Source: Haliotis rubra
Lineage: Eukaryota
DNA length: 64,000 bases
NCBI RefSeq assembly: GCF_003918875.1
Contig: NW_025767123.1
Location: 868,001-932,000 of the forward strand
Direction: 5' to 3'
The position numbers were made by a program, and so were the translations under genes. Every line of letters starts with the position of its first letter. Positions within the stretch are counted from its first letter, which is position 1. Below the pieces are notes generated by a model. That model was not told the DNA's origin. It did no database searches and was given only the letters and a program-made list of their open reading frames with translations. Shown here piece by piece: positions 646 to 55,990 of this stretch.

Positions 646-2831
646 TTAGTCATTTTCAAAGCCTCCAATCAGGTTAAAGCGGTCTCCGAAAACGCCATCC
701 CCAGTGAACCCCGACACCGACAGCCGATACTCCGTGGCCTCGTCACCCACGGAGAAGGTGTTGTAAGATACTTGTCCGGGAGTGCTATCAAAATTCTTCA
801 ACGATATGTACAGCAAGTAAGCTCTGACGCTGGTCAGAGCATGCATCTTCTCCAGACCCAGCCACATGTAACAGTTGGAGTGGGTGAAACCAGACTTGTA
901 GTCGGCCCAGGGAACGTCGAGGTACGTCACGGGCTCAGCCTCACATCCACTGATGGTTTTGTCCCTGAACATGATCATGGCGGTGACTCCTTGACATTCC
1001 AAGTCAAACGGTTGTGCGGCTTTGGTCGGCCAGACAGTGTAGGTGCCAGTAGAATTACCAACGTACAGGGAAACGTCTGTACAGTCTGAAACAGTGACAT
1101 GATGACTGTCAAACACAGGTCAGTGATGGACAATGATGGACAAGAGCAATGAAGGAATCAACCAAGAACATCAATGTGTTAGTGACGTGACTGACCTAGA
1201 TGCATGTACAGTGACAACCTGAGAGTCGAAACCCACCGTCACAGGTTTCCTTCATGCCAAATGGACGCAGTTTCTATCTGGCGTTACCGAAGGAAAGTGA
1301 TATTCTTAACATGAACTCTTTCATCTTTTGCTTCGGTGAGGAGATCGTCATATAACTGAAGATTTACCTTCTATCCTGGTCTCACATATCCCTCCTGTAA
1401 AGGCAGGCAGACAGAGACAGGCATCAGCATCAAGGGTTCCTCCATTCTGGCAAGATGGCGAGGTCTAAAACAAAATAGGTGTTCAATGTAATAAAAAATA
1501 TAAAATATAGAAAGGAAAGCTTAACTGGAGGTTACAAGGTGAAGCGCTTGGGTAAGAGGCATAAGGACGAGTGTATTTCTTAAAAATGGATCTTCCACTA
1601 TATTTTGTATTGCAATATAGAAAAACTATTTATGTCGCCATTTGTGAATGCAACCTATCCACGATTACTCTTGTTTATTTTGGGTTTAAAGAAAAATGTA
1701 ACAATGAGCTAAATCATTTTTTAACATCAGGGGCGTTTAAGGTAGTGTGGTGCTTAAAGTGTTCGTTCGTCAAGCCGCCTCAAGATTCCCAACATGGGTC
1801 CAATATGTGAAGCTATAAGGATAGTTTAAGGATATATTATGTTCTTGTCACGATATTGGCGAAATACTTTATATTGTACTTCACTTACTCTCTGGAGGGA
1901 GGAGACCCAAAAATTGGTCTTCACACATCGTACCAATGCGGAGAGTCGAACCCGGGTCTTCGGCGTGACGAGCGAACGCTTTAACCACTGGGCTACCCCT
2001 GCAGCCCCCAACTCAGTGGAATGGCTTCAAGTTTCCAAAAGTTAACTGTCCCTTCATGTGGAGTAATATTCCACCAGTTCCAGATTTTGGTGTTCACATT
2101 TCTCAACTTTTTGAGGTACAGTCAGACATGCTCGTTGGATCACCATGTCAAAGAGCATCATTCGACTCTTGCTCAGAAGTTGTCTCATCAAGGTTAGGAC
2201 ACAAAATGCATGAGTTTTTATTGTAGACATGTGGCAGAAATTTCAAAATCTGGCACATCAGTGACAAAAGATGATCTCCGATGCAATTCCTTATTTTGAC
2301 TTTTACCCAACAGTCCCGATATTCTCAGGTGAACAATTTACTTGCCTATGTTTATGACACTGGTGGGGCAGGATACGCTAAGATCTGGTATCATCACTGT
2401 TTTTGTGCTGATTCATAATACATTCTCAAGACACAGATAGAATTGTACAATAGATTTCTTTTAGATGTGGAAAGGTGTCGCTCATATGCTTTGAATATAT
2501 TCAAATTAGAACTCACCTGACTGGAAGTGGGGAACTCAGTGAAAACCTTGCAGGTAAGGTTGGGAACACTGACAGGAACGACACGCTGCTCCATTGTCAA
2601 GACGGAGCATTTGTTGTCGTCGTTGCAGTAGATGAGACCGGTGCAGTTGGTGACGCCGTTGCAGGTGTTGGCACATTCGAGAGCCGAGGTTGTCTCTACG
2701 TAGTCGAAGACCATTGTTGCATCAATATGTGTCTGTTCTTCCTTGGAAAACCGCTGTGCAGAACACTGAGGTGAGCAGTTGACATTCACTGCTGTATAAA
2801 CAGTTACAAGCAAGAGTTGAAAACAAATCAT
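646..2831 (-). pseudogene. PAN/apple-EGF-fibrinogen-related gene copy A1, 3'-truncated in exon 3
   Basis: Exon 1 2831-2517 (MICFQ...SSQ|GTGAGT), exon 2 1464-1368 (TSPSCQNGGTLDADACLCLPAFTGGICETRIE, AG/GT ends), exon 3 from 1085 (DCTDVSLY...). Homology to paralogues stops at ~671 (GDRFNL), followed by unrelated IGGFEND* (stop 646-648). The FReD C-terminal part is missing relative to 41871-44091. Confidence 0.8.
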
Positions 2832-3574
2832 ATTTTGATTGCAGTGTAAGAAGAAGTTTCAAGATCGGCTCCAACAACCGTACCACTGTGATATGTGTGA
2901 CAGATCACCTGACTGTTTCCCTGGATGTCTGTGTTTGACTTTAACTATAACTGTGTTTGACCATTACCATGACTTCATGATATATCTGTATCCATAAAAT
3001 GAAAGTTTCCTTTTGTCTGACAGCATGGCACGCAATACTCAATTAAACGTGGTGATTCTTAATTCTACCTTATCTCAAAGAAGAACAAAACTAAGATCAG
3101 ATAATGATATTTAATTAAAGATATAGATTTTTTTCATTTTTTAACATTTGTTGTATACGCTGAGCATATTGACACTTCGTCACATTCACACTTGGGGTGA
3201 AAATATTGTTCTGCTTCAACACCTATTTTATTCCAACACAATTGTCTCTAAGTCATTAAGCGAAATTCGCGATATGGGTTTCGTTTGGATTCAAATCCCC
3301 ACAATGAAACGGTATATTTACACATTCTACACAGGGATTCAATGAGCTTTCAATTATTGGATGACTATTACTGACTTGTCTGAGGATCGTTCCTGCACAC
3401 TGTATAGCCTCGGGGTGCTAGTGTGAAGCAAAGAACTCTTGAAATACACAAAGATCGGTGGTCAACTTTGTATTTAATTGAAGAAACTTTAGGTCTAATT
3501 GTGTATCTTAGTAAACAAAACGAAGGTGAAATCTGTTTACTCATAAAATATACTGTCAATACAAACCCAAGTTT

Positions 3575-4400
3575 GAGCTACATACTGCCCTTGAGCAAGT
3601 TCATGATACAGCAACAGGGGCTGATGATAATCACTATCAGCTCCGAAAGCATTTGCCTGATTCATATCTGGAAACACTTCTAGATATGTTTGAAAAAATA
3701 TGGACATCAGAGAATTTTTCGCCCTCGTGGCGTAATGCCATTGTGGTCCCTATATCAAAACGTGGCCAAGATCATACTGATCCTTCTAATAACAGACCAA
3801 TATCTATAAAACCATGGAACGAGTGGTTAATAATAGATTATTTTGTACTTGGAAACCAATAACTTAATGAATAATATACAAAGTGGTTTCCGATGTAACA
3901 ATGATCATATGCCAGGTTAGAATCCTTTGTTAAAAATGCCATAGTATCTAAACAACATGTTCTCTCAATTTTCTTCGATCTTGAAAAAGCCTACGATACC
4001 ACTTGGAAGCACGGTATTCTGAAGGATGTACATGATATTGGTTTGAGAGCTCGTTTACCTCATTTTATCTCCAAATTTGTAACAGACAGGCATTTTCGCC
4101 CTGGGTCCACCCTGTCTGATCATTACAGTCAGGATCAGGGTGTTCAACAATTTGCCAGTATTTTGTCTTTCAGAGGTTTTAACTGATTCAGTTGATGGAT
4201 CACTTTTCGTGGATGATTATAATGTTTTTTGTCGTGGTGACAATAAATTTCTCAAATGGTCAATTGAAAATGGTTATAAATTTTCTAAATCAAATACAAA
4301 TTGTTATATCTGCATAAGGACCTAGAACTATTTTTAAATGGCACTCCCATCCAAGTTGTAAAGGAGGCCAATTCTTGCGACTTATCTTTGACTCTCATTT
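3575..4400 (+). mobile_element. Decayed non-LTR retrotransposon RT fragment (I/Nimb-like)
   Basis: WRNAIVVPISKRGQDHTDPSNNRPIS, QSGFR, FFDLEKAYDTTWKHGI, SLFVDDY in broken frames. Confidence 0.8.
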
Positions 4401-4863
4401 GATTGAGTGAGTGAGTTTAGTTTTACGCCGCACTCAGCACTATTACGGCTACATGGCGGCGGTCTGTAAATAATGCAGGTGTGCGAGGAAGGATGGAGAC
4501 GGCACAGCACAGGTAAATGAATCTATAACTTTGTCGGCACTTGCGCATCAGCATTGTGGGATGTCAAGGTCATTGGTGTCAAGGACACAGTATGATAACA
4601 ACAGCGAAGGAGACGTGTTTGATTGAGTGACTTGTCACGGTTTTACCTTTCTGCATAAAAGACAGACGTTGTGTGTACATATGTCACGGGGAACGTAATG
4701 TTCCATCACGTCAGCTACAGCCACAGAACCTCCAACAGCTGGTACATGCACTGCAGGGAGAATGTGTGAACATTCACCAGGCCACAATTCGCAATCTGAT
4801 TGGGTCATAGGGGCGACGATGCCAGTCAGTTCTCTACTCTTATGGGGGGACATACAAGATACT

Positions 4864-5019
4864 GAGTTTGGATTTACGCCGCTTTTAGCAATATTCCAGC
4901 AACATCACGGCGGGGCACACCAGAAATGGGCTTCACACATTGTACCCATGTGGGGATTCGAACCCGGGTCTTCGGTGTGACGAGCCAACGCTTTAACCAT
5001 TAGGCTGCCCTACCGCCCC
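4864..5019 (-). mobile_element. tRNA-derived SINE (family 1)
   Basis: Reverse complement has A-box TAATGGTTAAAGCG and B-box GGGTTCGAATCCC, plus the shared 3' GCTGGAATATTGCTAAAAGCGGCGTAA. Confidence 0.8.
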
Positions 5020-5534
5020 TGAAATTTAAACAATGTATTATTTATATTATACATAAAGTATACATCTGAAAACTAGTTTTGCGTTTATTTGTTTCTTCTT
5101 TCTTGGCAGACTATATTCCCTATTGAGAGCAGGTGACATAGCCATCAGGATATCTACATTTTGATTAGGACTGAGAACTCAGGGTGCACGTTCAGATATA
5201 CTACTGAAGGCTTAAATTTAACTACAGTTTTCATAATTGAAAGAGGTTAACATAATGACATAACATAATTTACATAAGTAGCAACAACAGAAGAATAGCA
5301 TTGCAACAACGTGATGGACAGGGTCCACATGATGAGGAGGCAAATCAAATGGGACTAATCATACAAGCGTGAGATGGAGCGATTCACTCAGGGGGAAGCA
5401 GACATGACTTAACAGACAGCGAATTCCACACACTCTGAATAGCAATGTCAATGCATCACAACTGAAATTATCCCAAGACTCCAAAACATCCAAGTCATAC
5501 TGAAGGTGGCCAAAGACGGTATTATAGACATTGT

Positions 5535-5540
5535 TTTATT
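5535..5540 (-). other. Candidate polyadenylation signal AATAAA for B1 (47144-47149 for B2)
   Basis: First AATAAA I found on the minus strand after the stop codon, lying beyond the short 44-bp array. Confidence 0.4.
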
Positions 5541-5574
5541 TTAGTTTTAATAAACCTCAGTGCTGTACATTCCC

Positions 5575-5725
5575 TTGCAAAAGTACCGCACATGTATAGT
5601 GCATATGTCGTGAAAGTTGTGTACGAGGACGGTACATGTATAGTGCATGTGTCATGAAAGTTATATGCCAGTACCGTACATGCATAGCTCATATGTCGTG
5701 AAGGCTATGTGCAAATGCCGTTTAC
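5575..5725. repeat. 44-bp minisatellite, short array (~3 units) downstream of B1
   Basis: Degenerate units of GTGTCGTGAAGGTTATGTGCAAGTACCGTGCATGTATAGTGAAT. Confidence 0.8.
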
Positions 5726-5752
5726 ATATCGTTAACCATTAGGGAGTCAGTG

Positions 5753-8721
5753 TTAGGCAGGATATATGAACATGTAGATGCTTTTGCATTCGGAAGGGGT
5801 GCCATCAGCAAGAATCCAATAAATGTCATATCGTTGGTGAGGATTCGTCTGACAGACATCCAACCTGTTCCACCAGGCTCCACGATGCCACTCAGCACAA
5901 GGGTTGACTGAGTTGTTGCAGTGATCCTTGGCACAGAAGTGACTACCATCCAGGGTTGACGCTGGATCCCCGAGGTTGAAGCGGTCTCCGAAAACGCCAT
6001 CCCCGGTGAACCCGGACACCGACAGCTGATACTCCGAAGCCTCGTCACCGACGGAGAAGGTGTTGTAAGCTACTTGTCCGGGAGTGTTATCAAATCTCTT
6101 CAGTGACATGTACAGCGAGTAAGATCTGACGCTGGTCAGAGCATGCATCTTCTCCAGACCCAGCCACATGTAACAGTTGGAGTGGGTGAAGCCAGACTTG
6201 TAGTCGGCCCAGGGAACGTCGAGGTACGTCACGGGCGCCGCCTCGCAGCCACTGATAGTTTTGTCCCTGAACATGATCATAGTAGTGACGCCTTGACATT
6301 CCAAGTCAAACGGTTGTGCGGCTTTGTTCGGCCAGACTGTGTAGGTTCCAGTAGAGTTACCAACGTACAGGGACACGTCTTTACAGTCTGAAACAGTAAA
6401 ACATTGACTCTCAAACATAGGACAATGGTGGACAAAAGCAAAAGTGTCATATATCAAGGGCATCAATGTGTTAGTGAGTTGGACATAAACCAACTTTGTA
6501 CAATATTCGAATTGGTTAAAACATAGACATGTTATGAATGAACTGTGACCCATCATACGAAGTAAGAGAGTCAACCCATTTTGAGCAGCATCGTCTATTA
6601 GCTTGACGACGAAACACTTTGGTGAAATTCATGAGCTTGGTTGGTGCCGACTGACCTGGAAGCATGTACAGTGACAACCTGAGGTTCGAACCCACCATCA
6701 CTGGTGTTTCTCGCGCCTAACTGACGCAACTTCTTTATGGCGGTACTGATGGAAGGTGATATTCTTAACAGGAATTCTTTAGGGATTCATCTTTTGCTTC
6801 CTTGCAGAGATCTTCACGATTGGTGAGTCCGGTTACACATACAAATGAAACTTCTGGGAAATGACCCTTACAAAACAGGATCACATAAATATGTCACGAT
6901 GCCAAAATATTCCAAATCTGTAACTGAAGGTTTACCTTCCATCCTGGTCTCACACTTCCCTCCTGTAAAGGCAGGCAGACAGAGACAGACAGCACCATCA
7001 AGGGTTCCTCCATTCTGGCATGATGGCGAAGTCTGAAACAAAACAGGTGCTGTTGGTTTTTCTCTAGTTCAAAACAAACAAAGGAAAGCTATACCAGATG
7101 TTTGCAGGTGGAAAACACTTTAAAGGAAGAACAACTGGCAGGTTTCTTTAAAATGCGATTTCCAATAGCTTACAATGCTGGCTTGTTATGCCGAAAGGTA
7201 CGGGTTCGATTCCCCTTATGGATATAATGTCTGAAGCCCATTTCTGGGGTTCCCCACAGTCAGATTCCTTTATTGCTCAAAACAAACATAGGAAAGCCAT
7301 ACCAGATGTTTGCACGGGGAAAACACTCAGAGGACTGACTGACTGACTGAGTTTGGTTTTTCGCCGCTTTTAGCAATATTCCAGCAATATCACGGCGGGG
7401 GACACCAGAAATGGTCTTCACTCATTGTACCCTTTTGGGATTCGAACCCAGGTCTTCGGCGTGACGAGCCAACGCTTTAACCACTAGACTACCCCACCGC
7501 CCCAACACTCAGAGGAAGAACAACTGACAGGTTTCTTCAAAATGCGATTTCCAATAGCTTACAGTGCTTGCTTGTTATGCCGAAAGGTACGGGTTCGATT
7601 CCCCTTATGGATATAATGTCTGAAGCCCATTTCTGGGGTTCCCCACAGTCAGATTCCTTTATTGCTGAAGGCGGAGTAAAACCAAACTCGTTTGCCCATT
7701 TTAACTTTACCCCAAAGAAAACAACGCAGTTACTACACATTTCTGGATTTCTCATATCAGTTGTAAAGACAAAATATGATATAATCTAGTTTATACAAGT
7801 TTTATATACAGTCTCTATGTGGAACTCGAACCAATATAAGTCTTTGTTATTTCAAAGAAGATATGATCTATGTACCTACAATTATACGTGCAACCTATCC
7901 ACTCAAAGTATTTGTTATGTCCTGTTAAGGAAAAGTGTCACAAGACTTGAGTATTTACACAAGCGGAATTCAATCAAGACAAACATGGATTTTCAACCTA
8001 AGAGGTGTTGGGGTAGCCTTGTGGTTACAGTGCTTCCTTGTTATGCCAGAAGGTACGGGTTCGATTCCCCTTTGGATATAATGTCTGAAGCCCATTTCTG
8101 GGGTTCCCCACAGTCAGATTCCTTCCAAACTCGTTTGCCCATTTTAACGTTACCCAAAAGAAAACAACAACGAATACTACACATTTCAGGATTTACAGTC
8201 TCATATTAGTTGTACACACAAAACATGACGTTATGTCAAACTCGTTAGGAAACGGGAATTTCACACGCTCAATTTGACAGAGTAGAAATCATGATGCGTT
8301 TTAGAGGGAGATGTCTGAAGCCAGTCATTGTATCTTTCATATTTAATTCTTTAATATCTTTAATTGATTTACAATTATCTCCCCTGAATATATTCAAATT
8401 TGAACTCACCTGACTGGAGGTCGTGACCTCTAAGAATGCCTTGCAGGTCGGGTAGGGAACGCTGACAGGAACGGAAGGCTGATCCAATGTCAACATGGAG
8501 CATCTGTTGTCGATGTTGCAGTAAATGAAACCGGTGCAGTTGGCGACGCCTTTGCAGGTGATGGCACATTGAGGGACTGACGTCGTCTGTATGTAGTCGA
8601 AAACCATTGCTGCGTCAACACCTGTCTGTACCTCCTGGTAAAAACTCGAAACGGTACATTGTGCACAAAGGATTGCAGTCAATCCTGCAAAACTAGTAAG
8701 TAAAAGGTGATACGATTTCAT
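5753..8721 (-). CDS. Secreted PAN/apple-EGF-fibrinogen C-terminal domain protein, copy B1 (347 aa, intact)
   Basis: Exons 8721-8410 (312 nt, phase 0), 7032-6936 (97 nt, TSPSCQNGGTLDGAVCLCLPAFTGGKCETRME) and 6387-5753 (635 nt) total 1044 nt in frame with canonical GT-AG. Hydrophobic signal peptide, CxxxC PAN pattern, FReD motifs WADYKSGF, WLGLEKMHALT, FSVGDEASEYQLSV, CAEWHRGAWW. Confidence 0.88.
7335..7503 (-). mobile_element. tRNA-derived SINE (family 1) with 13-bp TSD
   Basis: TSD AACACTCAGAGGA at 7322-7334 and 7504-7516. Empty site in B2 at ~48722. Confidence 0.88.
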
Positions 8722-9674: not shown

Positions 9675-10060
9675 GCCTCTACAAGAACAGTACTCTACAA
9701 GTCCCTCCCTTATCTAACGGAATTCTACAAATTCCCATTCTTATCTAACGGTACTCTACCACTTTCATCTAACAGTACTCCACAAGTTCCACCCTTATCA
9801 AACGGAACTCTACTCCCACCTTCATCCAACAGTTCCCAAGTTCTCACCCTTATCTAATGGTACTCTACAAGTTCCCAGCCTTATCTAATGGTACTCTACC
9901 AGTTCCCACCTTCATCTAACAGTACTCTACAAGTTCCCTTATTCCCGTATCTAACGGTGGTGCGACTCTATAAGTTTCCATCCTTGTCTAATGGTACTCT
10001 ATAAGTTTCCACCTTCATCTAACGGAATTCTGCAGGTTTCCCACTCTTATCTATCAGTAT
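9675..10060. repeat. 31-bp minisatellite upstream of B1
   Basis: Units of CTCTACAAGTTCCCACCCTTATCTAACGGTA. Confidence 0.88.
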
Positions 10061-12104: not shown

Positions 12105-13518
12105 ATGTACCGTGCATGTGTAGCGGATATGTCGTGAAGGTTGGCAGTACCGTGCAAGTACCTAGCAAGTATAACCGAATGTGTGGTGAAGGTTATGTGC
12201 AATGCACGTGCATGGTCCCGAAGGTGCATCGTGAAGGTTATGTGCAAGTACCGTGCATGTATAGTGACAATGTCGTGAAGGTTATGTGCATGTACCGTGC
12301 ATGTATAGTGAATGTGTCGGTTATGTGCCTGAAGGTTATAGCGCATGCAAGGGTGCGTGCAAGTACCGCATCGTGAAGGTTATGAAGGTTATGCAAGTAC
12401 CGTGCATGTATAGCGTCGTGAAGGTTATGTGCAAGTACCGTGCATGTCTTGAAGGTTATGTGCCAGTACCGTGCATGTATAGCGGATGTGTCGTGAAGGT
12501 TATGTGCAAGTACCGTGCATGTATAGTGAATGTGTCGTGAAGGTTATGTGCCAGTACCGTACATGTATAGTGAATGTGTCGTGAAGGTAATGTGCAAGTA
12601 CCGTGCATGAGGTCGTGCAAGATTGTATATGTGCAAGTTACCGTGCATAGGTCGTGAAGATTATGTGCAAGTACCGTGCATATATGTCGAATGTTATGCG
12701 CAAAGTGAAGGCATGTTAAGTGATGTGCGTGAAGGTTATGCGTAACCGTGCATGTATAGGAATGTGTCCGGAATGTGTCGTGAAGGTTATGTGCAAGTAC
12801 CGTGCATGTATAGTGTGTCGTGAAGGTTATGTGCAAGTACCGTGCAGGTATAGTGTTGTGATCGTGAAGGCGTGCAAGCACCGTGTGCAAGTACCGTGCA
12901 TGTATAGTGAATGTGTGTTATGCATAGTGAAGGTTATGTATGCATGTGTCGTGAAGGTACCCGTGCAAGTACCGTATAGTGTGATGTGTCGTGAAGGTTA
13001 TGTGCAAGTACCGTGTATATAGTGTTATGTGTAGTGATGTGTCGTGAAGGTTATGTGCAAGTATGTGCGTGCAGGTTATGTACCGTGCAAGTGAAAGTTA
13101 TGTGCAAGGTATAGTGCAAGTACCGTGCATGTATAGTATGTCGTGAAGGTTATGTGCAAGTACCGTGCATGTATAGTGGATGTGTCGTGCAGGTTATGTG
13201 TAAGTACCGTGCCTGTATAGTGAATGTGTCGTGAAGGTTATGTGCAAGTACCGTCCAGGTATAGTGAAGAGTGAAGGTTGTGCAAGCAAGTACCGTGCAT
13301 GTATAGTGGATGTGTCGTGAAGGTTATGTGCAAGTACCGTGCAGGTATAGTGAATGTGTCGTGAAGGTTATGTGCAAGTACCGTGTACGTATTGTCGATG
13401 TCGTGAAGGTTATGTGCAAGTACCGTGCATGTATAGTGAATGTGTCGTGAAGGTTATGTGCAAGTACCGTGCATGTATAGCGCATGTGTCGTGAAGGTTA
13501 TGTGCAAGTACCGTGCAT
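12105..13518. repeat. 44-bp minisatellite, long array downstream of C1
   Basis: Tandem 44-bp units with ~33-bp variants. The middle of the array is irregular. Confidence 0.93.
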
Positions 13519-13557: not shown

Positions 13558-16500
13558 TTAGGCAGGATTTATGAACATATAGATGCTTTTACATTCGTGA
13601 GCGGTACCATCGTCAAGAACCCAGTAAATGTCATATTGTTGGTGAGGATTCGTCTGGCAGACATCTAGCCTGTTCCACCAGGCTCCACGATGCCACTCGG
13701 CACAAGGGTTGACTGAGTTGTTGCAGTGATCCTTGGCACAGAAGTGACTCCCATTCAGGGTTGTAGCTGGGTCCCCAGGTTGAAGCGGTCTCCGAAAACG
13801 CCATCCCCAGTGAACCCCGACACCGACAGCCGATACTCCGAGGCCTCGTCACCCACGGAGAAGGCGTTGTAAGATACTTGTCCGGGAGTGCTGTCAAACT
13901 TCTTCAAGGACATATGTAGAGCGTGTAAGGTCGGACACTGGTCAGAGCATACATCTTCTCCAGACCCAGCCACATGTAACAGTTGGAGTGGGTGAAACCA
14001 GACTTGTAGTCGGCCCAGGGAACGTCGAGGTACGTCACGGGCGCCGCCTCACAGCCACTGATGGTTTTGTCCCTGAACATGATCATGGTGGTGACTCCTT
14101 GACATTCCAAGTCAAACGGTTGTGCGGAGTTGGTCGGCCAGACAGTGTAGGTGCCAGTAGAGTTACCAACGTACAGGGACACGTCTGTACAGTCTGAAAC
14201 AGTGACATGATGACTGTCAAACACAGGTAAATGATGGACAATGATGGACAAAACCAATGAAGGAATCAACCAAGAACGCCAATGAGTTGGACAACCCATC
14301 TTTGAACAGTATTCGAATTGGTTAGAAATAGAGACTCTGTTATAACTGAACTGTGATTCACAATACGAAGTAAGAGAGTCAACTCGTTTTAAACAGCATT
14401 TCAACTACAGCACTGTCTGTCAGCTTGACCACGTGACACGTTGGTGAAACCCATGAGTTCGGTTGGTGCCGACTGACCTGGAAGCATGTACAGTGACAAC
14501 CTGAGGTTCGAACCCACCATCACTGGTGTCCCTCGCGCCTAACTGACGCAACTTCTATATGGCGGTACTGATGGAAGGTGATATTCTTAAAGGTCACATG
14601 CAACCGGAAAACATAATGAAAACACAATTATCACTTATTCATGACATATAATATACATTGCTGATTGTGTGAAAAACCAAATAAACAAAATTATAAGCGT
14701 ACAATCGCAAATCAAAAGTGTAATATTTTGTACTTGGGTTTACTTCCCTCGAAACGAAGCACCCGGGAGACCGAACCCAGTCAGAGCGAGTGGGCGTGCA
14801 CTCAAGTTTAACGAAGTCTCTCATTGGCTGGTTCATTTGTCAATACCCTGAGGGCTCATTGTGTGTGTGTATATATATAGAGATGATCTGTTTGATTGGC
14901 ATTTTAGAAGTATGGTGAGTAATAAGAAAGTAAGAGTGACAACGGTATAAGAATCCATACCGAAACGTCGCATCATATACAATAAAAGAAGTTGTTATCC
15001 ATATGGAATGTGTATAGAGATGTTGGGTTTTGTAAATATATGCTCTCTGCATTTGCGTTCGATCCAATCAACAAATGCTGAGATGGTGAACTACTGCGTG
15101 GCTGGAAACTGTAGTTCGTCTAAGCAGGGATAATCTACAACATATAGTCTTCCTGGTCAAAATACAAAGCAGGACTTGAAACTGACAATCTGAGTTTGCA
15201 CCGGTTTCCAACCGATCAGTCATCCGAGAAAAATGGATGCAGTTTTTTGCAACCCACAGACATCATAACATGTCATGTGTACCTATCTGTGTAATTACAT
15301 AATGTGACAGAGACAGAACTCAGGTGCAAGAGCCATCAATCAATGTATTTTGTTTATGGTGTATAGCCTGATAGGTGTTAAGTTCAAATTGAATGTGGTC
15401 AATGATTGAAGTTGTGTATTGCATATTGTCATTAGCAGACAGGCAGGCAGACACATAGGTGTCAATAAAACAGACATTGAGTTTTTTCTGTGACAGAGAC
15501 TGCTTATCACAATCAACATATTTTTCTATGTTTCCATAGACATGTATTAAAACATTCCAGTTTCAAGCTGAGCAATTTTTAACAATGAAATTAGTATTTC
15601 TAATTCTACACTTTCTTGAAAACTTGGTTTGCAACTTATGGGACCAGTGTATTTTATTACTGCAGACCCAAGATGCTTGTAATCACAAGAAACATCTCTT
15701 GTTCTCCAACTTCGACCACAGCGATAATCCTTGCACGCATCACTTGCTGTGTTTTTACGAGTCGCCTTCCCGGTTCAAGCCGCGCAAACCTAATCACTAG
15801 GCATGCGCTATGGGCGCAGCACAGCTGTTGAAACCACTTTTCACCCCAGCGCTGGGGTGAAATTAGTGAATCGTTTGAACTACGATTTCGCGGGGTTTTT
15901 TTCATCGCGTTATTTTTCAACTTTATAAGTTGAATTTGCATTTTTGATAATTTGTTACTGTAAGTCCATACCGAAAGGTATCAGAATCTGCAAAGTTGTG
16001 TTTTGCGTTGCATGTGACCTTTAACAGGAATTCTTTAGGAATTCGTCTTTTGCTTCCTTGCAGAGATCTTCACGATTGGTGAGTCCGGTTACATATACAA
16101 ATGAAACTTCTGGGAAATGACCCTTACACAAACAGGATCACATAAACATGTCATGATGCCAAAATATTCCATATCTGTAACTGAAGGTTTACCTTCTATC
16201 CTTGTCTCACAGTTCCCTCCTGTGAAGGCAGGTGGACACTGACAGGCAGCACCAAGAAAGCTTCCACCATTCTGGCATGATGACGAGGTCTAAAACAAAA
16301 CAGAGGTTGTTGTTTTTTCTCACATTTATACCAAGGAGGGCCACACCAGATGTTTGCACGGTGAAAGACCAAGGTAAGAAACATCACAACTGGCCAGTAT
16401 CTTCAAAATGCGATTTCAAAAATACTTCTTTCTTATCTCAAAGAAGAAATTGTTCTTGTACCTATAATGGTACGTGCAACCTATCCTCAAAGTATTCGTT

Positions 16501-17378
16501 GTGTCCTGTTTAAGAAAAGTGTCACAAGGCCTGAGCATTTACGCAAAAGAATTCAATCAAGGCAAAATGGATTTTCAACCTAACAAGTGTTGGGGTAGCC
16601 TTGTGGTTACAGTGCTCACTTGGTATGCCGAAAAGATACGGAATCGACTCCCCTTATGTATATATTGTCTGAAGGCCATTTCTAGTATTCCCCAAAGTCA
16701 CATTCCTTAATTGCTAAAGGTGGTGTAAAACCATACTCACTTGCCCATTTTAACATTATCCAAAATGCAACGACGAAGAATACTACACATTTCTGGATTT
16801 ACAGGTTTTATATACAGTTGTTGTGTCCAACTTGTGGGAGAAGCACATTCCACACGCTCAGTTTGACAGAGTAGAAATCATGATGAGTTATTGATGGTGA
16901 TTTCGGCACATTCAAGTAGGACACGATTTTCGACTGTTCTAATTGCTCAATATCGTCCAGTCACGATATAGCTGAAACCAGTCATTGTATCTTTCATATT
17001 TAATTCTTTAATATCTTTAATTGATTTACAATTATCTCCCCTGAATATATTCAAATTTGAACTCACCTGACTGGAGGTCGTGACCTCTAAGAATGCCTTG
17101 CAGGTCGGGTAGGGGACGCTGACAGGAACGGAAGGCTGATCCGATGTCAACATGGAGCATCTGTTGTCGATGTTGCAGTAGATGAAACCGGTGCAGTTGG
17201 CGACGCCGTTGCATGTGATGGCACACTGAAGAACCGTCGCCGTCTGTACGTAGTCGAAAACCATTGCTGCGTCAACACCTGTCTGTACCTCCTGGTAAAA
17301 ACTCGAAACGGTACATTGTGCACAAAGGATTGCAGTCAATCCTGCAAAACCAGTAAGTAAAAGGTGATACGATTTCAT
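13558..17378 (-). pseudogene. PAN/apple-EGF-FReD gene copy C1 with two frameshifts in exon 3
   Basis: Exons 17378-17067, 16289-16193 (TSSSCQNGGSFLGAACQCPPAFTGGNCETRIE) and 14193-13558 (636 nt vs 635). Versus copy C2 there is a +2 nt insertion at ~13912 and a -1 nt deletion at ~13776. These could be consensus errors. Confidence 0.72.
14591..16020 (+). mobile_element. Non-autonomous Kolobok-like DNA transposon in intron 2 of C1
   Basis: TTAA duplication, TIR AGGTCACATGCAAC. B genes show the empty site ATTCTTAACAGGAATTC. Internal THAP-like remnant MVNYCVAGNCSS at 15083. Confidence 0.8.
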
Positions 17379-18384: not shown

Positions 18385-19875
18385 TACTAGGCACATAAAG
18401 AAACTGGGCATACAAAAATTTAAAATCTACAGTTATCAAACCTGTGTAGACACATAAGGATTTAAACTCAGAGATTAGTGACATGTATCCAACATGCATG
18501 CACGTGCCACGTTCCGTGACGTCAGTGGGTTCGTCCTTGAGACGTGCAATACGTTGTTGCACGTGCATTCCTGGAAAGAGAAACAGAGCAAATGAATGCC
18601 ACACAATACTGTCACTTTGGAAAGCTCAACCCTTGCCCTTGCGAGCGTTCAAAAAATTAAACGGCTATTGAAACGCATAGCATGCCAAGGCTCACGTCTG
18701 CACAACGTCATGAGGCCATTGGGATGGTCCGTGGGGGGAATGTCTCAACGACAAGTGGCTGCACATTTCCACTGCCACCGGAACATCATTTCTGCACTGG
18801 TGAGACGCTACCAGAACACAAATGACGTCATCGATCGGCCACGTTCTGGACATCCACGTGTAACAACGCCAAGACAGGACAGATGGATAAGGGTGACCCA
18901 TCTTCGCCACAGGTTTCAGACTGCAGTGATGACTGCCCGAACCATCCCAGGACTTCGCCGTATCCACCCCAACACAGTCCGACAACGTTTACGTCATCAC
19001 GGGATCAGACCACGACGTCCTGCCATACGGCCTATCCTGACACAACGTCATCGACAAGCTCGCCGAATGTGCTGTCGAAATCATGTCCGCAGACCCTTGT
19101 TTTGGTGGAGAAATGTTGTTTTTACAGATGAGTCCAGGTTTCACATTTCCCATAGTGATGGACGTCAACGTGCCTATAGACGCGTGGGAGAACGTTATGC
19201 ACAGGCCTGTGTCTTGGAGAGGAATCGCTTTGGTGGTGGTTCCGTGATGATTTGGGGTGGAAAAACAGCACGCCAAAGAACTCCTTTGGTGATTGTTCAG
19301 GGCAACTTAACTGGTGTGGGCTACAGGGATCAGATTCTTCGACCTGTGGCAATTCCTTTTCTGCAACGTCATGGTCCTGGGTTAACATTCCAACAGGACA
19401 ATGCCCGCCCTCATACGGCAAGGGTTGCTATGGATTTCTTGCAACACCACAACGTTGACTTACTGCCTTGGCCTGCAAATTCACCGGATCTCTCCCCGAT
19501 AGAGCATGTTTGGGACGAGATGGATCGACGTCTACGCCGTCTTCCTCCTCCGCCAGATAACGTCCTTGACCTTGCAACAGAACTTGAGAGAATCTGGCGT
19601 GACATCCCACAAGCCTTTCTTGCACGTTTGATAGGCTCCATGCGTCGTCGATGCACTGCTGTTCTCAATGCCGATGGTGGACATACCCGTTATTGAGCTT
19701 GTGACATGGTCGTTTGACCCCTGTCCCGCTTGTGGACTCGTGACGTCGTTGTGATTGATTTTTCAATTGAAATTCTCCCGACTTGTTATGGTCTCCATTA
19801 AAGTTTATATGTACCTTTGACCTTATCAACTGGGATAATATTTTGACAGTGCACAGTTTCTTTATGTGGCTAGTA
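18385..19875 (+). mobile_element. Tc1/mariner DNA transposon (DD34E), full length
   Basis: TIRs TACTAG(G/C)CACATAAAGAAACTG(G/T)GCA with TA duplications at 18383-84 and 19876-77. Confidence 0.93.
18682..19696 (+). CDS. Tc1-like transposase (likely native start 18682, +1 frameshift in G6 run at 18733-18738)
   Basis: FTDESRF ... FQQDNARPH ... WPANSPDLSPIEH, with 34 residues between the second D and E. N-terminal HTH region with RPRSGHPR linker. Confidence 0.9.
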
Positions 19876-26770: not shown

Positions 26771-27800
26771 TCAACGCCTTTGAGGGACTGTCAACTGTTG
26801 TGCTACAACCAGCGGGCCGAAATGGTGAATGCCGGAGACGTCCTCGGTGGCGATGTCCCTCAGGTAGTGGTTTGCAAACACCATGTCCGATTTCCAAAAG
26901 CAGCCCTCCATTATCGTCGTGATCGAGCAATTCCCATGTAGAACGAGTGTTGACGCCAGAGCTCTAACTTCGTGTGGGTTGGAGGCTTTTGGAGGATCAA
27001 GTCCTGCTGCTTTGTAGGCCCGTAGTATGACAGTTCTGATCCAGATTGATATCGTAGTGCGGGAGACCTCTCTCTGTGTCGCTGTTGATATCGGGATGAA
27101 GAGACGCTTGAATTACTGTCTCCTGATCCTGGATCTTTGTAGGTATACTTTCAATGCCCTTACTGGGCACAAGGATAGGTCCGTCGTATCTTGTGGTCCA
27201 AGGACGGATGATAATGCTGGGATCTGTCCGGTTGACCTGGCAGTTGATTCTTTGATATGAAGTCCCATCGCAGTCCCATATGCATGGTGTTTTGATTTTC
27301 ATCAAATCGTGTTCTCTCGAAGTCCAGAGCATGTATTTCCGACATCCTTGCTGCTGTTGCTAGGGCTAGCAGGAACAGCGTCTTATGTGTCGAGAATTCG
27401 AAGGATGTCCTCTCTAATGGTTCGTAGACGTCACTGGTGAGATGTCGTAGAACAACGTTGAGGTCCCACGCCGGAGCTTTAAATCTCTGTTGTTGGTCCT
27501 CCAATTTATAAGAGCGTAGTAAGGCCAGTAACTCTGGTACTTTCGTCAGCTTGGCACCTGTCCTCATGGTGATGACTGAGCTCAATGCCGCTAGGTATGT
27601 TGAGAGTGTTGACCCTTTTAATCGCTTTGTTTGCCGTAGGTGACAAAGGTAGTCCGCCACTTGAGGGTGTGTCGCTTTTATGGCTGTAAAACCGTTCCTC
27701 GCAGCGTATGTCTCGAAGCTATGCCACTAGTGTTACTGCTTTCGCTGCCCTGGCGGAATATCCTCTCTTGTTCAAGCACACCTTAATACAGTCCACACGT
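26771..27800 (-). pseudogene. DIRS tyrosine recombinase (frameshifted)
   Basis: KTLFLLALATAARMSEIHAL (catalytic R), CPVRALKVY, PHEVRALAST (HxxR), FWKSDMVFANHY (catalytic Y). Stop at 26771-26773. Confidence 0.88.
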
Positions 27801-29685
27801 GTAGTCGGAACACCCCTGGGTTGCCGTGCGCCTGCTTTGTGTGAGGATGTACTAGCAGATTCGTCCACTCTGGTAGTTGCAGTTGAGGTGGTCCTAGTTC
27901 TTGTATGAGAATGGGGAACCATATTATCGCTGGCCAGTAGGGCGCGACCAAAATCAGTTGGAGGTCCTTCGTCTGGCAACACCCTCGGACATAAGCGCTG
28001 GCGGTGGAAACGCGTTCCCAGGATACGCTTAGAGCGTCCGTTGCCCATGCTTGTGGATCTGGCACTGGTGAGACGAATGTTGTCAGTTGATTGTTGAATC
28101 TCGTGGCGAAGAGGTCTATTAGCAGTACTTCCATCTCTTTGATGATCTGCTTGAAGATCTCTGGATGTAGCATCCATTCTGTTGGAGATGGTTGCGTTGG
28201 ACGGGAGAGTGCGTCTGCTATCACATTCTTGGCTCCCAGAATGTGTCATGCTCTTATTTGGATGTTCAGATCGTCTGTTAGGTCGAACAGTTGAAAGCAG
28301 AGGTCCAGGAGGTTCGATGACCGTGTTGATCCTTGCTTGTTTATGTAGAACGCCACTGTGGAGTTGTCCGTGTGCACCATCAGATGAGCATTCTGTAGAA
28401 TGGTGGTCCAGCGGAGTATGGCGTTTACGACTGCTTTCATTTCCAGCATGTTGATGTGCAGACCTTTCTCCTCTTTGGTCCATGTCCCGGCCGACACGTC
28501 GTTGTCGAGGTGTGTTCCCCAACCTTGGAGTGATGCGTCCACGTACAGATGTGTCTTGCACTCCGGCTCTGTTAAATAGGTGCCTTCGCAGACATTCGAT
28601 CTCTGAGTCCACCATAGTAGATGTGGTCGTAGTGCGTCCGGGAATTCCGAAGGATTCTGGGTCATCTAGATGAGCATTGACGAAGACCTGTAGTGGGCGT
28701 AGTTGTAACCTTCCTCTGGCTGTCATGTTTTGCGCTGACGTGAGGAGACCCAACAGACTCTGCCATTGTCGTAGTGGCCACGGAGAGCTTGCGAGATTGT
28801 CTGTTGTATCTTGAGCCATCGGTCCTCTGGTACTACTATGCAGTTCTGCGTCGTGAGGAACCGGATTCCTAGGAACTGCAGGTCCTCTGTAGGTTCAAGG
28901 TCCGACTTGAGGAGATTCACTAGCCACCACAGTTGTGTAAGCAGTCTGATGGTGAAGTCCAGTTGTAGTCTGTAGTCTGAGATGCTTGGGATCTTGATGG
29001 ACTTGAATCCCGTCGTCTAGGTAGAATGCACTGCGTAGGCCTTGATGATGTAGACTATGGGCTTCGTCACCCTTGTAAACAACCAGGGGGCCAATGATAT
29101 TCCAAATGGCAGGACCTTCCATTGGTAGTGTCGTCCATCCAGTATAAACCTCAGGTACTTCCTTGAGTCCGGATGTACAGGAATATGCAGGTAGGCGTCC
29201 TGTAGATCTATGCTGGCCATGTAGTCCCTCGGACGGACGAGGTGGAGTAATTGAGGTAGATGTATCATGCTGAACTTGGGAGGCCTGCGTAGATAATCTC
29301 TGTTGAACGCCCTCATATTGTAGATGAGTCGGAACTTTTCTTTGGAGTTTTTCTTGGGTACTAGGAAAACTGGGGATTAGAAACCTGGTGTGATGTGGTC
29401 TTGATCCACTACTTCTATGGCTTTCTTTACTAGTAGAGATGTAACCGCCTCTCGTAGCCTCTCTGTCCGATGGGTCTTGAAGTCGAACTTTTGAGGGTCG
29501 ACTGTTAACAGCGGAGCTGCTTGTAGTTGTATGTGATATCCGTCTCTTAGGATGTTGGATACAAATGGACCTTGAAGTAGTCCCCAGTTCTCCCAGTATA
29601 GTTGAAGACGTCCACCCACTTGTGAAGGTTGTACGGGAACGGCTGGGGGGTGGAAGACTCCAGTCCTTCCGAACCCCTCTTTCAT
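27772..29685 (-). pseudogene. DIRS pol: reverse transcriptase, RNase H and methyltransferase-like domains (frameshifted)
   Basis: VGGRLQLYWENW, IDLQDAYLHIPV, LPFGISLAPWLFT, FYLDD; RNase H LYVDASLQGWG, HINMLEMKAV, HTDNSTV, ADALSR; MT-like IDLFATRFN. Confidence 0.88.
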
Positions 29686-32295: not shown

Positions 32296-33990
32296 ATATG
32301 TACAAGTACCGTGCAGGGATAGTGGATTGGTCGTGAAGGTAATGTGCAAGTACCGTGATTGTATAGCGGATGTGTCGTGAAGGTTATATGCAGGTACCGT
32401 ACATAGGTCGTGAAGGTTATGTGCAAGTACCGTACATAGGTCGTGAAGGTTATGTGCAGGTACTGTGCATGTATAGTGAATGTATCGTTAAGGTTATGTG
32501 CAAGTACCGTGCAGGTATAGCGCATGTGTCGTGAAGGTTATGTGTAAGTACCGTCCAGGTATAGTGAATGTGTCGTGAAGGTTATGTGCAAGTACCGTGC
32601 ATGTATAGCGGATGTGTCGTGAAGGTTATGTGCAAGTACCGTGCATGTATAGTGAATGTGTCGTGAAGGTTATGTGCAAGTACCGTGCAGGTATAGTGAA
32701 GGTTATGAGTGAAGGTATATGTGCAAGTGTATGTGTCGTGAAGGTTATGTGCAAGTACCGTGCATGTATAGTGAATGTCGTTGTGAAGGTTATGTGCAAG
32801 TACCGTGCATGTATGGAATGTGTATAGTGAATGTGTCGTGAAGGTTATGTGCAAGTACCGTGCATGTATAGTGAATGTGTCGTGAAGGTTATGTGCAAGT
32901 ACCTTGCATGTATAGTGAATGTGTCGTGAAGGTTATGTGCAAGTACCGTGCATGTATAGTGAATGTGTCGTGAAGGTTATGTGCAAGTACCGTGTGTATA
33001 GTGAATGTGTCGTGAAGGTTATGTGCAAGTACCTTGCAGGTATATGAATGTGTCGTGAAGTTTATGTACCGCATGCAAGGTATAGTGCATGTATAGCGGA
33101 TGTGTCGTGAAGGTTATGTGCAAGTACCGTGCATGTATAGCGGATGTGTCGTGAACGTTATGTGCAAGTACCGTGCATGTATAGTGGATGTGTCGTGAAG
33201 GTTATGTGCAAGTACCGTGCATGTATAGTGGATGTGTCGTGAAGGTTATGTGTAAGTACCGTCAAGCTATAGTGAATGTGTCGTGAAGGTTATGTGCAAG
33301 TACCGTGCATGTATAACGGATTTGTCGTGAAGGTTATGTGCAAGTACCGTGCAGGTTTCGTGAAGTTTATGAGCAAGTACCGTGTATGTATAGTGAATGT
33401 ATCGGAAGGTTATGTGCAAGTACCGTGCAGGTATAGTGGATGTGTCGTCAAGGTTATGTGAATGTACCGTGCATGTATAACGGATGTGTCGTGAAGGTTA
33501 TGTGGAAGTACAGGGCATGTATAGCGCATGTGTCGTGAAGGTTATGTGGAAGAACCGTCCAGGTATAGTGAAGGTTATGTGCAAGTACCGTCCAGGTATA
33601 GTGAATGTGTCGTGAAGGATATGTGCAAGTACCGTGTATGCATAGTCGATGTGTAGTGAAGGTTATGTGCAAGTACCGTGCATGTATAGCGGATGTGTCG
33701 TGCGGGTTATGTGCAAGTACCGTGCATGTATAGTGAATGTGTCGTGAAGGTTATGTGCAAGTACCGTGCATGTATAGTGAATGTGTTGTGAACGTTATGT
33801 GCAAGTACCGTGCATGTATAGCGCATGTGTCGTGAACGTTATGTGCAAGTACCGTGCATGTATAGCGCATTTGTCGTGAACGTTATGTGCAAGTACCGTG
33901 CATGTATAGCGCATGTGTCATGAAGGTTATGTGCAAGTACCGTGCATGTATAGCGCATGTGTCGTGAACGTTATGTGCCAGTACCGTGCA
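32296..33990. repeat. 44-bp minisatellite, long array downstream of fragment D
   Basis: Regular 44-bp units, abutting the DIRS terminus. Confidence 0.93.
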
Positions 33991-34030
33991 TATTGTTTAT
34001 GCCTGCTGACTTTTTTAGGGAGTCTGAGTA

Positions 34031-34594
34031 TTAGGCAGGATCTATGAACATGTAGATGCTTTTACATTCGTGAGTGGTACCATCGTCAAGAGCCCAGTAA
34101 ATGTTATATTGTTGGTGAGGATTCGTCTGGCAGACGTCTAGCCTGTTCAACCAGGCTCCACGATGCCACTCAGCACATGGGTTGACTGAGTTGTTGCAGT
34201 GATCATTGGCACAGAAGTGAACCCCATCCAGGGATGATGCTGGGTACCCTAGGTTGAAGCGGTCTCCGAAAACGCCATCCCGAGTGAACTCGGACACCGA
34301 CAGTCGATACTCCGAGGCCTCGTCCCCCACGGAGAAGGGGTTGTAAGATACTTGTCCGGGAGTGGTATCAAATCTCTTCAGTGACATGTACAGCGTGTAA
34401 GGTCTGACGCTGGTCAGAGCATGTATCTTCTCCAGACCCAGCCACATGTAACAGTTGGAGTGGGTGAAACCAGACTTGTGGTCGGCCCAGGGAACGTCGA
34501 GGTACGTCACGGGCGCCGCCTCGCAGCCACTGATGGTTTTGTCCCTGAACATGATCATAGTAGTGACGCCTTGACATTCCAAGTCAAACGGTTG
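34031..34594 (-). pseudogene. Orphan FReD exon-3 fragment (copy D), 5'-truncated
   Basis: Reads QPFDLECQG...FIDPA*. Homology to paralogues ends abruptly at 34594 and the splice acceptor is gone. No exon 1 or exon 2 seen between 34.6 and 41.1 kb. GAWW is changed to GAWL. Confidence 0.8.
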
Positions 34595-35617
34595 ACGTTC
34601 ATGGCTAACACTGCTTTCATGAGGCCAGTTCAGCAAAGAAAGGATAGGGTGTATCGTGGACTGGACTTCGATACTGGAAATTATTCTGACGAAGAGTTAC
34701 ATACGAAACTGTAACTATACACTTCATAGGAACTAAAATACATGTTGTACAAGAACATGATGCCTACGTTTCATCTTTTATCACTTGTGTAAAGGTTTAT
34801 ATATGTTTTACTACACTAAATGTGTGAATTTCCTCTGTAAATATATTATTCAAACAAACACTTTCAAAGAATCAAACACATACACCCTATACCCACGTAT
34901 GATATGATATTGGACAAGACTAAATGTAAATAATTAAATTATTTTTATGAAAAAACATCCGAATGATTACATTATGATACTGAAAGTGTAATCGGCGGGA
35001 TATGGTGATTGTGTATACTCTTATTCTACCGACCTTCACCTCAGAGAAATTGCCAAATATGTACAACAATGTTGACGTATGACATCACTACCGTTGAGAT
35101 TTCTTAAAAAATGGCGGCAGACATGGGTTTTGCGAGGACCCTTCCTTTGATTCAGGGATCGTTTGTACATAAATATGAGATGTAAGTAATCAGAATGATT
35201 CTAACTATCTGTGTATTGTTACATGTTTTTTTCATTTTAAGAAAGAGAAGAAGCGGCCAGAAATGCCGATTATCACCGTTGTCGTTCTGCGTGATTTTGC
35301 GTCAGTCATGGCATCACGCTGCGCAGAAACTTGACAGTTTCGTATAAACACGTATCACATTCCTGTATTGCATCTATTTTTAATTTCCTATTTCTTGCTA
35401 CTATGCTCTTTCCATGCAAAAGGGTGTCTGAAAATTGAGAAAATGCAACACAGTATAAAGTCTGAAATTGTCTTTGTTTACATTTCAGACAGGTGTTGTC
35501 TTTCGAGCACGGCATTTGTTTCCACCTCCAATATCTTTCGTTTCAGTTTATCTAGACACTTGGTATTGGTGACAAAGACCAGTTGTAATTAGATTCTCAA
35601 ATGTATGAGGAATTCAG

Positions 35618-41564: not shown

Positions 41565-41833
41565 TAGCATGTGTGATGAATGTTATGAGCATGTGAATGT
41601 GACGTGTATGTGTGGTGAATGTTAAGGGCATGTGTGGTGAATGTAATGAGCATGTGAATGTTACGTGTATGTGTGGTGAATGTTAAGGGCATGTGTGGTG
41701 AATGTTATGAGCATGTGAATGTTACGTGTATGTGTGGTGAATGTTAAGGGCATGTGTGGTGATTGTTATGAGCATGTATGGTGAATGTTAAGTGCATGTG
41801 TCGTGAATATTAAGTGCAAGTATCGTCCATGTA
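41565..41833. repeat. 61-bp-period minisatellite downstream of A2
   Basis: GAGCATGTGAATGT recurs at 61-bp spacing (C at 41590, 41651, 41712). Built from ~20-bp CATGTGTGGTGAATGTTA subunits. Confidence 0.8.
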
Positions 41834-47184: not shown

Positions 47185-47335
47185 TGCAAAAGTACCGCAC
47201 ATGTATAGTGCATATGTCGTGAAGGTTGTGTACAAGGACGGTACATGTATAGTGCATGTGTCGTGAAAGTTATATGCCAGTACCGTACATGCATAGCTCA
47301 TATGTCGTGAAGGCTATGTGCAAATGCCGTACATA
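47185..47335. repeat. 44-bp minisatellite, short array downstream of B2
   Basis: Homologous to 5575-5725. Confidence 0.8.
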
Positions 47336-50864: not shown

Positions 50865-51420
50865 GCCTCTACAAGAACAGTACTCTACAAGTTCCCACCC
50901 TTATCTAATGGTACTCTACAAGTTCCCACCCTTATCTAACGGTACTCTACCAGTTCCCACCTTCATCTAACAGTACTCTACAAGTTCCCACCCTTATCTA
51001 ACGGTAATCTACCAGTTCCCACCAGTATCTAACTGTACTCTACAAGTTCCCACCCTTATGTAATGGTACTCTACAAGTTCCCACCCTTATCTAACGGTAA
51101 TCTACAAGTTCCCACCCGTATCTAACGGTACTCTACCAGTTCCCACCAGTATCTAATGGTACTCTACAAGTTCCCACCCCTATCTATCGGTACTCTACAA
51201 GTTCCCACCCGTATCTAACGGTACTCTACCAGTTCCCACCCGTATCTAACTGTACTCTACAAGTTCTCACCCTTATGTAATGGTACTATACAAGTTCCCA
51301 CAAGTTCCCCCGTATCTAACGGTACTCTACAAGTTCCCACCCTTATCTAACGGTACTCTACAAGTTTCCACCTTTATCTAAGGGAATTCTGCAGATTCCC
51401 ACTCTTATCTAACAGTACCT
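50865..51420. repeat. 31-bp minisatellite upstream of B2
   Basis: Longer, more homogeneous array of the same unit. Short remnants at ~19890-19965 and ~62270-62335 upstream of the C genes. Confidence 0.9.
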
Positions 51421-55950: not shown

Positions 55951-55990
55951 TATTGTTTATGCCTACTGACATTTTTAGGGAGTTTGAGTA

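Follow-up and report, generated by a model that had tools for sequence, protein, structure and literature searches.

Few recognition domains have expanded in molluscs as strongly as the fibrinogen-related domains (FReDs), and nearly all reasoning about their function is copied from tachylectin-5A (TL5A) and the ficolins, that is, from calcium-dependent binding of acetyl groups. TL5A (PDB code 1JC9), the ficolins and FIBCD1 (4M7F) share the same three-subdomain fold, two core disulfide pairs and a CA....G.WW...C framework that connects metal loop and ligand pocket. Here we describe a divergent abalone FReD found in a 64,000-nucleotide stretch of the Haliotis rubra genome (RefSeq assembly GCF_003918875.1, contig NW_025767123.1, positions 868,001 to 932,000 of the forward strand), which will be referred to as the window and in whose coordinates all positions are given. 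The minus-strand segment 5753-6387 of the window is the last exon (exon 3) of a three-exon Haliotis gene, denoted G2, and encodes a complete FReD with its stop codon. Probably, G2 belongs to a tandem family restricted to Haliotis, in which the FReD was rebuilt on the stem of the clade into a form that is independent of calcium and of the acetyl pocket and carries added disulfides.

The metal site of the described lectins includes Asp198 and Asp200 in TL5A, which we take to be equivalent to Asp393 and Asp395 of FIBCD1. In FIBCD1 the calcium ion is coordinated by both side-chain oxygens of Asp393, by Asp395, by the carbonyl groups of Ser397 and Asn399 and by two water molecules, and TL5A and the ficolins possess homologous sites (PMC3908420). 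The S1 pocket of the same protein is formed by Tyr405, His415, Tyr431 and Trp443 with Ala432 at its base, the tryptophan being replaced by tyrosine in TL5A, L-ficolin and M-ficolin, and a cis peptide turns the backbone NH groups of Cys414 and His415 towards the acetyl oxygen (PMC3908420).

Gene structure

The open frame of 212 codons extends over 5756-6391 on the minus strand and is closed by a TAA stop at 5755-5753. Residues are numbered according to this read, position 1 being intronic read-through and position 2 an aspartate whose codon spans the exon junction. The exon itself starts at 6387, after a ttt-cag acceptor and in phase 1; the open frame, the acceptor, the Pfam Fibrinogen_C match and the AlphaFold model all agree with its assignment to 5753-6387. 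Upstream on the same strand, exon 2 (6936-7032, bounded by cag before ACT and by gtaaac after GAAG) encodes an EGF-like region with four cysteines in the spacing C-x10-C-x-C-x8-C, ends in phase 1 and matches residues 104-136 of an annotated protein (P0007) with 100% identity. Exon 1 (8404-8721, minus strand) begins with an ATG at 8721, ends at the donor CAG-gtgagt and encodes the signal peptide, one N-terminal cysteine and a PAN/Apple-like domain with six cysteines. Signal peptides and cleavage sites were judged by eye throughout. The PAN_1 model of Pfam (cut-off 21.4) scores 26.4 bits in the H. asinina orthologue P0004 and 24.4 bits in the family member P0005, the G2-type sequence staying below the cut-off at 16 bits, and the EGF-like exon, with four cysteines only, gives no Pfam EGF match. 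Judged by its sequence, the gene product would be a secreted abalone protein composed of a signal peptide, a PAN/Apple domain, a short four-cysteine EGF-like region and a C-terminal FReD.

The NCBI model XP_046581857.1 (P0007), which spans 649-8721 of the window, fuses exons 1 and 2 of G2 with the truncated FReD exon of the neighboring copy G1 and skips the intact FReD exon of G2. This is likely an annotation mis-join, the alternative being a real read-through transcript.

Overall fold

Pfam assigns the domain to Fibrinogen_C (PF00147) with a score of 83.3 bits (cut-off 22; E=3e-23), and only residues 2-177 are covered by the match. The AlphaFold2 model, calculated from a 48-row alignment, has a mean predicted local distance difference test (pLDDT) score of 86.5 and a predicted TM-score (pTM) of 0.86. 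Foldseek gave TM of 0.74-0.80, with TL5A, FIBCD1, M-ficolin and FGL1 as top hits (0.75-0.80), and VIA-align superposed 192-199 of the 212 residues on M-ficolin, TL5A, FIBCD1 and fibrinogen gamma at 2.4-2.6 Å with Z of 22-23. The superposition of a predicted structure on tachylectin-5A or a ficolin, which the original prediction had suggested as a check, hence yields an ordinary FReD fold, and as modeled the G2 domain is a complete FReD comprising the A, B and P subdomains.

Four cysteines of the domain, Cys3, Cys32, Cys165 and Cys180, align with invariant or nearly invariant cysteine columns of FReDs, and by homology Cys3-Cys32 and Cys165-Cys180 are expected to form the ancestral disulfide pairs. 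The latter, canonical pair of the P subdomain, encoded together with the intervening helix and the WW strand at 5852-5899 (minus strand), falls in invariant alignment columns and is equivalent to Cys401-Cys414 of FIBCD1 (PMC3908420).

Five additional cysteines restricted to Haliotis

The FReD of G2 contains exactly nine cysteines, at positions 3, 32, 49, 73, 153, 158, 165, 180 and 202. The original prediction had listed them by their contexts DC, LEC, SGC, SNC, HFC, DHC, NPC, DVC and EC and had placed them in all four intact gene copies of the window; every context is found in the G2 frame, the last one as SEC, and alignment of the copies G2, G5, G6 and G7 bears out the second statement. Likewise present are FCAKDHCNNSVNPCAEWHRGAWWNRLDVC and TNPH(Q/H), to which it had also drawn attention. 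The pattern does not arise by chance. Proteins of H. asinina, H. cracherodii and H. rufescens with 77-84% identity share the nine positions, and a further H. asinina paralogue (P0006, 70% identity) combines them with an additional CxxC pair, giving eleven cysteines in total.

A word-based protein search returned Haliotis proteins only. An exhaustive search with HMMER, covering 1.84 billion representatives of 50%-identity clusters, yielded 4567 FReD relatives, of which the best 150 were combined with the hits of the word-based search into a comparison set of 193 near-full FReD units aligned to G2. Outside the seven-member group formed by the G2 query and six close Haliotis proteins there are 187 units, the divergent Haliotis fragment P0013 not being part of the set. 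Identity to the G2 FReD amounts to 83-91% in the close Haliotis clusters P0003 and P0007, drops to 49% in P0013, which also has cysteines at the five extra positions, and does not exceed 43% in the closest cluster representatives outside Haliotis. As had been anticipated, a canonical FReD has four core cysteines and an FSTxDxDND loop: four cysteines only are present in 143 of the 193 units, and the consensus reads FSTxDxDND...CA....G.WWY..C.

All nine cysteines occur in seven sequences including the query, all of them from Haliotis, among the best 150 of the 4567 representatives and the word-search hits; given this depth, convergent cases further out remain conceivable. No outside unit (0/187) has a cysteine at position 73, 153 or 158, and positions 49 and 202 are occupied by cysteine in one of the 187 units each. 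In the maximum-likelihood tree the nine-cysteine sequences form one clade with 100/100 support, whose stem measures 2.1 substitutions per site, while its internal branches, apart from that of P0013, are 0-0.35 long. The long stem followed by short internal branches indicates a burst of change and then stasis. On the evidence of alignment and tree, the five cysteines 49, 73, 153, 158 and 202 were gained on the stem of the Haliotis clade.

Two of them bracket a segment (6173-6247, minus strand) that runs from Cys49, located in a lineage-specific insertion of 6-7 residues, to Cys73 just before the WLG strand; the alignment shows this insertion as a loop added after the first strand of the sheet of the B subdomain. 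Cys202 (5786-5788, minus strand) stands at the start of the C-terminal strand in place of the leucine of YSLK, a residue found in 110 of the 187 outside units. The remaining two, Cys153 and Cys158, lie in the former calcium loop.

The former calcium-binding loop

When aligned with FIBCD1 and with the FReD consensus, this loop extends from F152 to C165 (FCAKDHCNNSVNPC; 5897-5938, minus strand), that is, F152-C-A-K-D156-H-C158-N-N160-S-V-N-P-C165, with the sequon N159-N-S following the second extra cysteine. The MAFFT alignment places Cys158 opposite Asp393 and Asn160 opposite Asp395 of FIBCD1, whereas phmmer, which sets the single-residue difference in length at another point, aligns Asn159 with Asp395. 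Under neither alignment is there an aspartate or glutamate in the stretch H157-C158-N159-N160-S161 or anywhere between Asp156 and Cys165, and consequently both carboxylate ligands of the calcium ion are gone. The N159-N-S sequon is present in nine of ten family members. Among the outside units both aspartates are kept in 127 of 187, and neither position is acidic in 23. Such a loss is no rarity in neighboring FReDs.

The acetyl-binding pocket

On the pocket side, Tyr405, His415 and Trp443 of FIBCD1 correspond to His169, Gln181 and Thr198 of G2, respectively. The mapping is anchored by the neighboring cysteines and by the C-terminal KxxxMxIxP motif and is unambiguous at these three positions. 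The distance from the second cysteine to the GxxW strand is 23 residues in FIBCD1 and 12 in G2, so that the loop carrying SNLNG and Tyr431-Ala432 is shortened by 11 residues. In addition, two extra residues (L177 and D178) precede the second cysteine of the P subdomain, where FIBCD1 has its cis peptide. With His169, Gln181, Thr198 and the shortened loop, the canonical acetyl pocket is not conserved. Pocket residues vary within the comparison set as well, tyrosine occupying the 405 position in 51 and histidine the 415 position in 34 of the 187 units. The rebuilt calcium and ligand loop that had originally been proposed thus holds in two respects, the absence of both aspartate ligands and the exchange of acetyl-pocket residues, in each case as judged by alignment.

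Selection among the paralogues

Pairwise comparison of the four intact FReD exons gives ratios of nonsynonymous to synonymous substitution rates (dN/dS) of 0.22-0.29 at dS of 0.18-0.28. Residues 149-185, which span the former calcium loop together with helix, WW strand and TNPH, are identical in the four intact paralogues. Over residues 148-185 eight codons vary by synonymous changes only and one is changed in its amino acid, compared to 32 codons of the first and 38 of the second kind in the remainder of the exon (marginal, Fisher p=0.029). From these counts the rebuilt region is shown, at the level of codons, to have been under purifying selection since the stem. The reverse pattern is seen at residues 186-201 (5789-5836, minus strand), the shortened pocket loop and β-hairpin turn, which is the most variable part among the paralogues, with eight codons variable in amino acid and two in synonymous positions only (also marginal, Fisher p=0.048). 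In the model the strands of this hairpin are formed by residues 189-194 and 199-211.

Disulfide pairing

Since nine is an odd number, at least one cysteine of the domain has to stay outside any intradomain disulfide. Assigning the pairs by co-occurrence of cysteines failed, as the five extra cysteines appear together in every family member and no intermediate with a subset of them was found; outside the family, cysteines at the extra positions occur only as single unpaired cases at 49 and 202. In ANGPTL3 the C-terminal strand packs between β3 and β4, and a hairpin is made up of the FST-like and the WW strand (PMC5928061). This published topology would allow 49-73, 49-202, 153-158 and 153-202, among others, so that the pair 49-73 is no foregone conclusion.

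The mature proteins P0004, P0005 and P0172, with signal peptides removed, contain 20 cysteines each, 11 in the N-terminal half and nine in the FReD, and a count by hand gives 20 for G2 and G7, too. P0004 lacks the N-terminal cysteine and has a fifth cysteine in the EGF-like region instead. The even total would agree with a single bond that connects the FReD and the N-terminal half, be it in the same chain or across two chains. TL5A forms interchain bonds via an N-terminal cysteine and a cysteine of the FReD.

Proposed mechanism and alternative interpretations

If the FReD was rebuilt on the Haliotis stem as we favor, the domain would no longer need calcium, nor would it bind acetyl groups via the canonical S1 pocket. 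Two extra intradomain disulfides, formed by four of the five new cysteines, would stiffen the inserted loop and the former calcium loop, and the fifth cysteine would pair with the single odd cysteine of the N-terminal half, within the chain or between chains. The ligand, be it a glycan or a protein, would be read by the surface around the variable hairpin of residues 186-201, which is proposed for this role because the paralogues differ there. A more specific version of this scheme, which we put forward only tentatively, is that covalent bonds replaced the metal. The cysteine that occupies or adjoins the place of the bidentate aspartate, together with the cysteine at the FST serine or with Cys202, might staple the loop that is normally held by calcium, and the ninth cysteine might serve as an interdomain clamp or give rise to covalent oligomers, resulting in a calcium-independent module with a new pocket and with paralogues diversified at a single hairpin. 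Should the extra cysteines indeed staple the former metal loop, nature would here have exchanged a metal site for disulfides, and the domain would offer a stable scaffold whose structure deserves to be solved.

Several observations weigh against the rebuilt, calcium-independent domain. The pLDDT is lowest at the very stretches that matter, 65 at residues 51-60 and 68-72 at residues 161-190, and Asn160 together with backbone carbonyl groups could still hold a weakly bound cation. The counts behind both Fisher tests are small, so that the tests are marginal and no more than suggestive. In the copy G6 an EGF-like cysteine is changed to arginine, leaving 19 cysteines, and the parity argument is therefore not universal. 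None of the annotated proteins retrieved uses exon 3 of G2, and in a search of sequencing runs no run recorded as RNA holds this exon. Four small runs of uncertain type yield contigs that are about 90-95% alike to it, but these are confined to the exon and cross no intron or splice joint.

A rather less likely reading is that the domain is a protein-binding module, comparable to angiopoietin-Tie2 or to the fibrinogen hole that receives a peptide knob, instead of a glycan lectin, and that the extra disulfides do nothing more than stabilize a secreted protein in sea-water-like haemolymph or mucus. The loss of the acetyl pocket and the concentration of paralogue variation on one hairpin would agree with this. 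So would the nature of the P subdomain, which is the most variable part between FReD proteins and serves different ligands (PMC5928061), as well as the PAN/Apple and EGF-like partners, which are typical of protein-protein and protein-carbohydrate modules (PMC7588048). However, the proposal overlaps with the favored rebuilt FReD, which leaves the ligand class open.

That the protein is still a calcium-dependent lectin for acetyl groups we regard as improbable. In such a lectin the metal site would have been rebuilt from Asp156, Asn159 or Asn160 and backbone carbonyl groups, with His169 and Tyr188 replacing the aromatic residues of the pocket. Asp156 is indeed kept and nearly invariant across the family, and calcium binding via the carbonyl oxygen of an asparagine is possible; furthermore, the placement of HQRY within the shortened pocket loop is ambiguous in the alignment, so that Tyr188 could sit near the Tyr431 position, and histidine occurs at the Tyr405 position in 27 of the 187 outside units. 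Yet the bidentate and the axial aspartate are both absent under every alignment, glutamine stands for histidine after the second cysteine and threonine for the tryptophan or tyrosine at 443, the pocket loop is shortened, and the former calcium loop carries a conserved N-glycosylation sequon.

Least probable of all, and rejected on account of dN/dS and cross-species conservation, is the view that the copies are decaying duplicates under relaxed constraint whose extra cysteines and loop changes are functionless degeneration: three of the seven window copies are defective, the run search gave no RNA evidence, G6 has lost one EGF-like cysteine and the array is rich in transposons and variable-number tandem repeats, but four copies have open frames and intact splice sites, dN/dS is low (0.22-0.29), residues 149-185 are invariant despite synonymous change, the nine cysteines are kept in four Haliotis species and AlphaFold predicts the fold with confidence.

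The tandem array and its surroundings

The window contains seven tandem copies of the gene on the minus strand, four of them intact (G2, G5, G6 and G7) and three damaged (G1, G3 and G4). Mapping of full-length proteins back to the window shows three coding exons with canonical splice sites in six copies, and the H. rubra proteins P0001, P0002 and P0171 match window copies essentially exactly.

Among the intact copies, G5 (41874-44091, minus strand) corresponds to P0002 by three exon matches, at 44091-43771, about 43353-43257 and 42509-41874, the last of which (41874-42509) is its FReD exon. G6 (47363-50050, minus strand) corresponds to P0001 and has an intact FReD (47363-47998). Its exon 2 (48546-48644) shows the replacement of an EGF-like cysteine by arginine (AVRLC versus AVCLC), which is also present in P0001 and produces the odd cysteine count of an otherwise intact gene. 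G7 (55994-59743, minus strand; FReD exon 55994-56629) is intact and corresponds to P0171.

As to the damaged copies, G1 (649-2813, minus strand) retains exons 1 and 2 and, according to protein and exon mapping, a FReD exon without a match after residue 140. In G3 (13561-17378, minus strand) exons 1 and 2 are open, while the FReD exon is split into three tblastn pieces in different frames, with two frameshifts near residues 93 and 138. G4 (34034-34627, minus strand) consists of a FReD exon alone, whose 5' end is replaced as seen from mapping and frame view and which is annotated as the 175-residue protein P0168; exons 1 and 2 of G4 were not found.

Three open reading frames of equal length (366 residues) are located inside the array, at 18596-19696 (plus strand), 27719-28819 (minus strand) and 60964-62064 (plus strand). 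The first of them matches DDE_3 endonuclease and Tc3-type transposase helix-turn-helix domains, which suggests, at the sequence level, that the three are apparently intact copies of a young Tc1/mariner-like transposon. Just downstream of the FReD stop codon, most copies are followed by a 44-bp tandem repeat of 2.7 to about 40 units, with arrays at 5585-5702, 12152-13518, 32297-33991, 47190-47334 and 54640-55951; downstream of G5 a 22/61-bp array at 41566-41818 takes its place. Upstream of their exon 1, G2 (9740-10053) and G6 (50876-51418) have arrays of a second minisatellite family, whose unit measures 31 bp.

Intron 1 of G2 harbors a short interspersed repeat at about 7200-7740 and 7954-8167, for which four sequencing runs show a huge summed contig depth and many rearranged joints. 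Open reading frames across this repeat carry the repeated peptide ...DIMSEAHFWGSPQSDSF..., and it is probably a very abundant SINE-like element.

In H. asinina (locus L001, 15790-18377) an open reading frame of 831 residues for a reverse transcriptase follows the orthologue P0004 within 4 kb. Within 10 kb no second family member was found, and the tandem arrangement may therefore differ between the species.

Comparison with known systems

Compared to TL5A, the ficolins and FIBCD1, the G2 domain has no acidic calcium ligands, replaces the pocket residues by histidine, glutamine and threonine, shortens the pocket loop by 11 residues, inserts two residues before the second cysteine and adds five cysteines. 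The family, conserved across abalone species, is annotated only under borrowed names such as "FIBCD1-like", "ryncolin-like" or "techylectin-5A-like", which would mislead ligand prediction and the reading of abalone immune transcriptomes, as in the Haliotis clade the fold appears to have been kept under purifying selection while calcium ligands and acetyl pocket were lost.

In a vertebrate setting and with a different N-terminal architecture, ANGPTL3 resembles G2 in that its calcium aspartate pair is not conserved, no ion is seen in the solved structure and the P subdomain is strongly remodeled (PMC5928061). Unlike G2, it contains the two canonical disulfides only and has no cysteine added in the former calcium loop. 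Angiopoietins do possess an additional disulfide within their calcium loop (C435-C437 in Ang1 and C433-C435 in Ang2; PMC5928061), but there it belongs to a functional calcium site that retains both aspartates, whereas in G2 the aspartates are gone and the extra cysteines of the loop stand at the serine of FST and at or next to the bidentate aspartate. Comparable in overall design to the predicted G2 product are the molluscan FReMs, with EGF-like and FBG domains, and the PAN/Apple FReDs (Biomphalaria FREP1, Lottia, Crassostrea), which are secreted, carry one C-terminal FBG domain and form expanded, duplicated families (PMC7588048, PMC10075465). None of the neighboring units outside the Haliotis group among the best 150 of the 4567 representatives and the word-search hits has the five extra cysteines.

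FReDs devoid of calcium as in ANGPTL3, the PAN/Apple-FReD and EGF-FReD architectures and a third disulfide in the calcium loop as in the angiopoietins are hence already known. A literature search found no description of the abalone family or of a nine-cysteine FReD, nor of the combination of cysteines at the serine of FST, at or beside the bidentate aspartate and at the leucine of YSLK with a cysteine-bearing insertion in the B subdomain and a pocket loop shortened by 11 residues. As read from the aligned proteins, this combination of five features is fixed across a genus-wide Haliotis family. Against the background of the very diverse FReD family it represents a lineage-specific and fairly modest variation and not a new kind of system.

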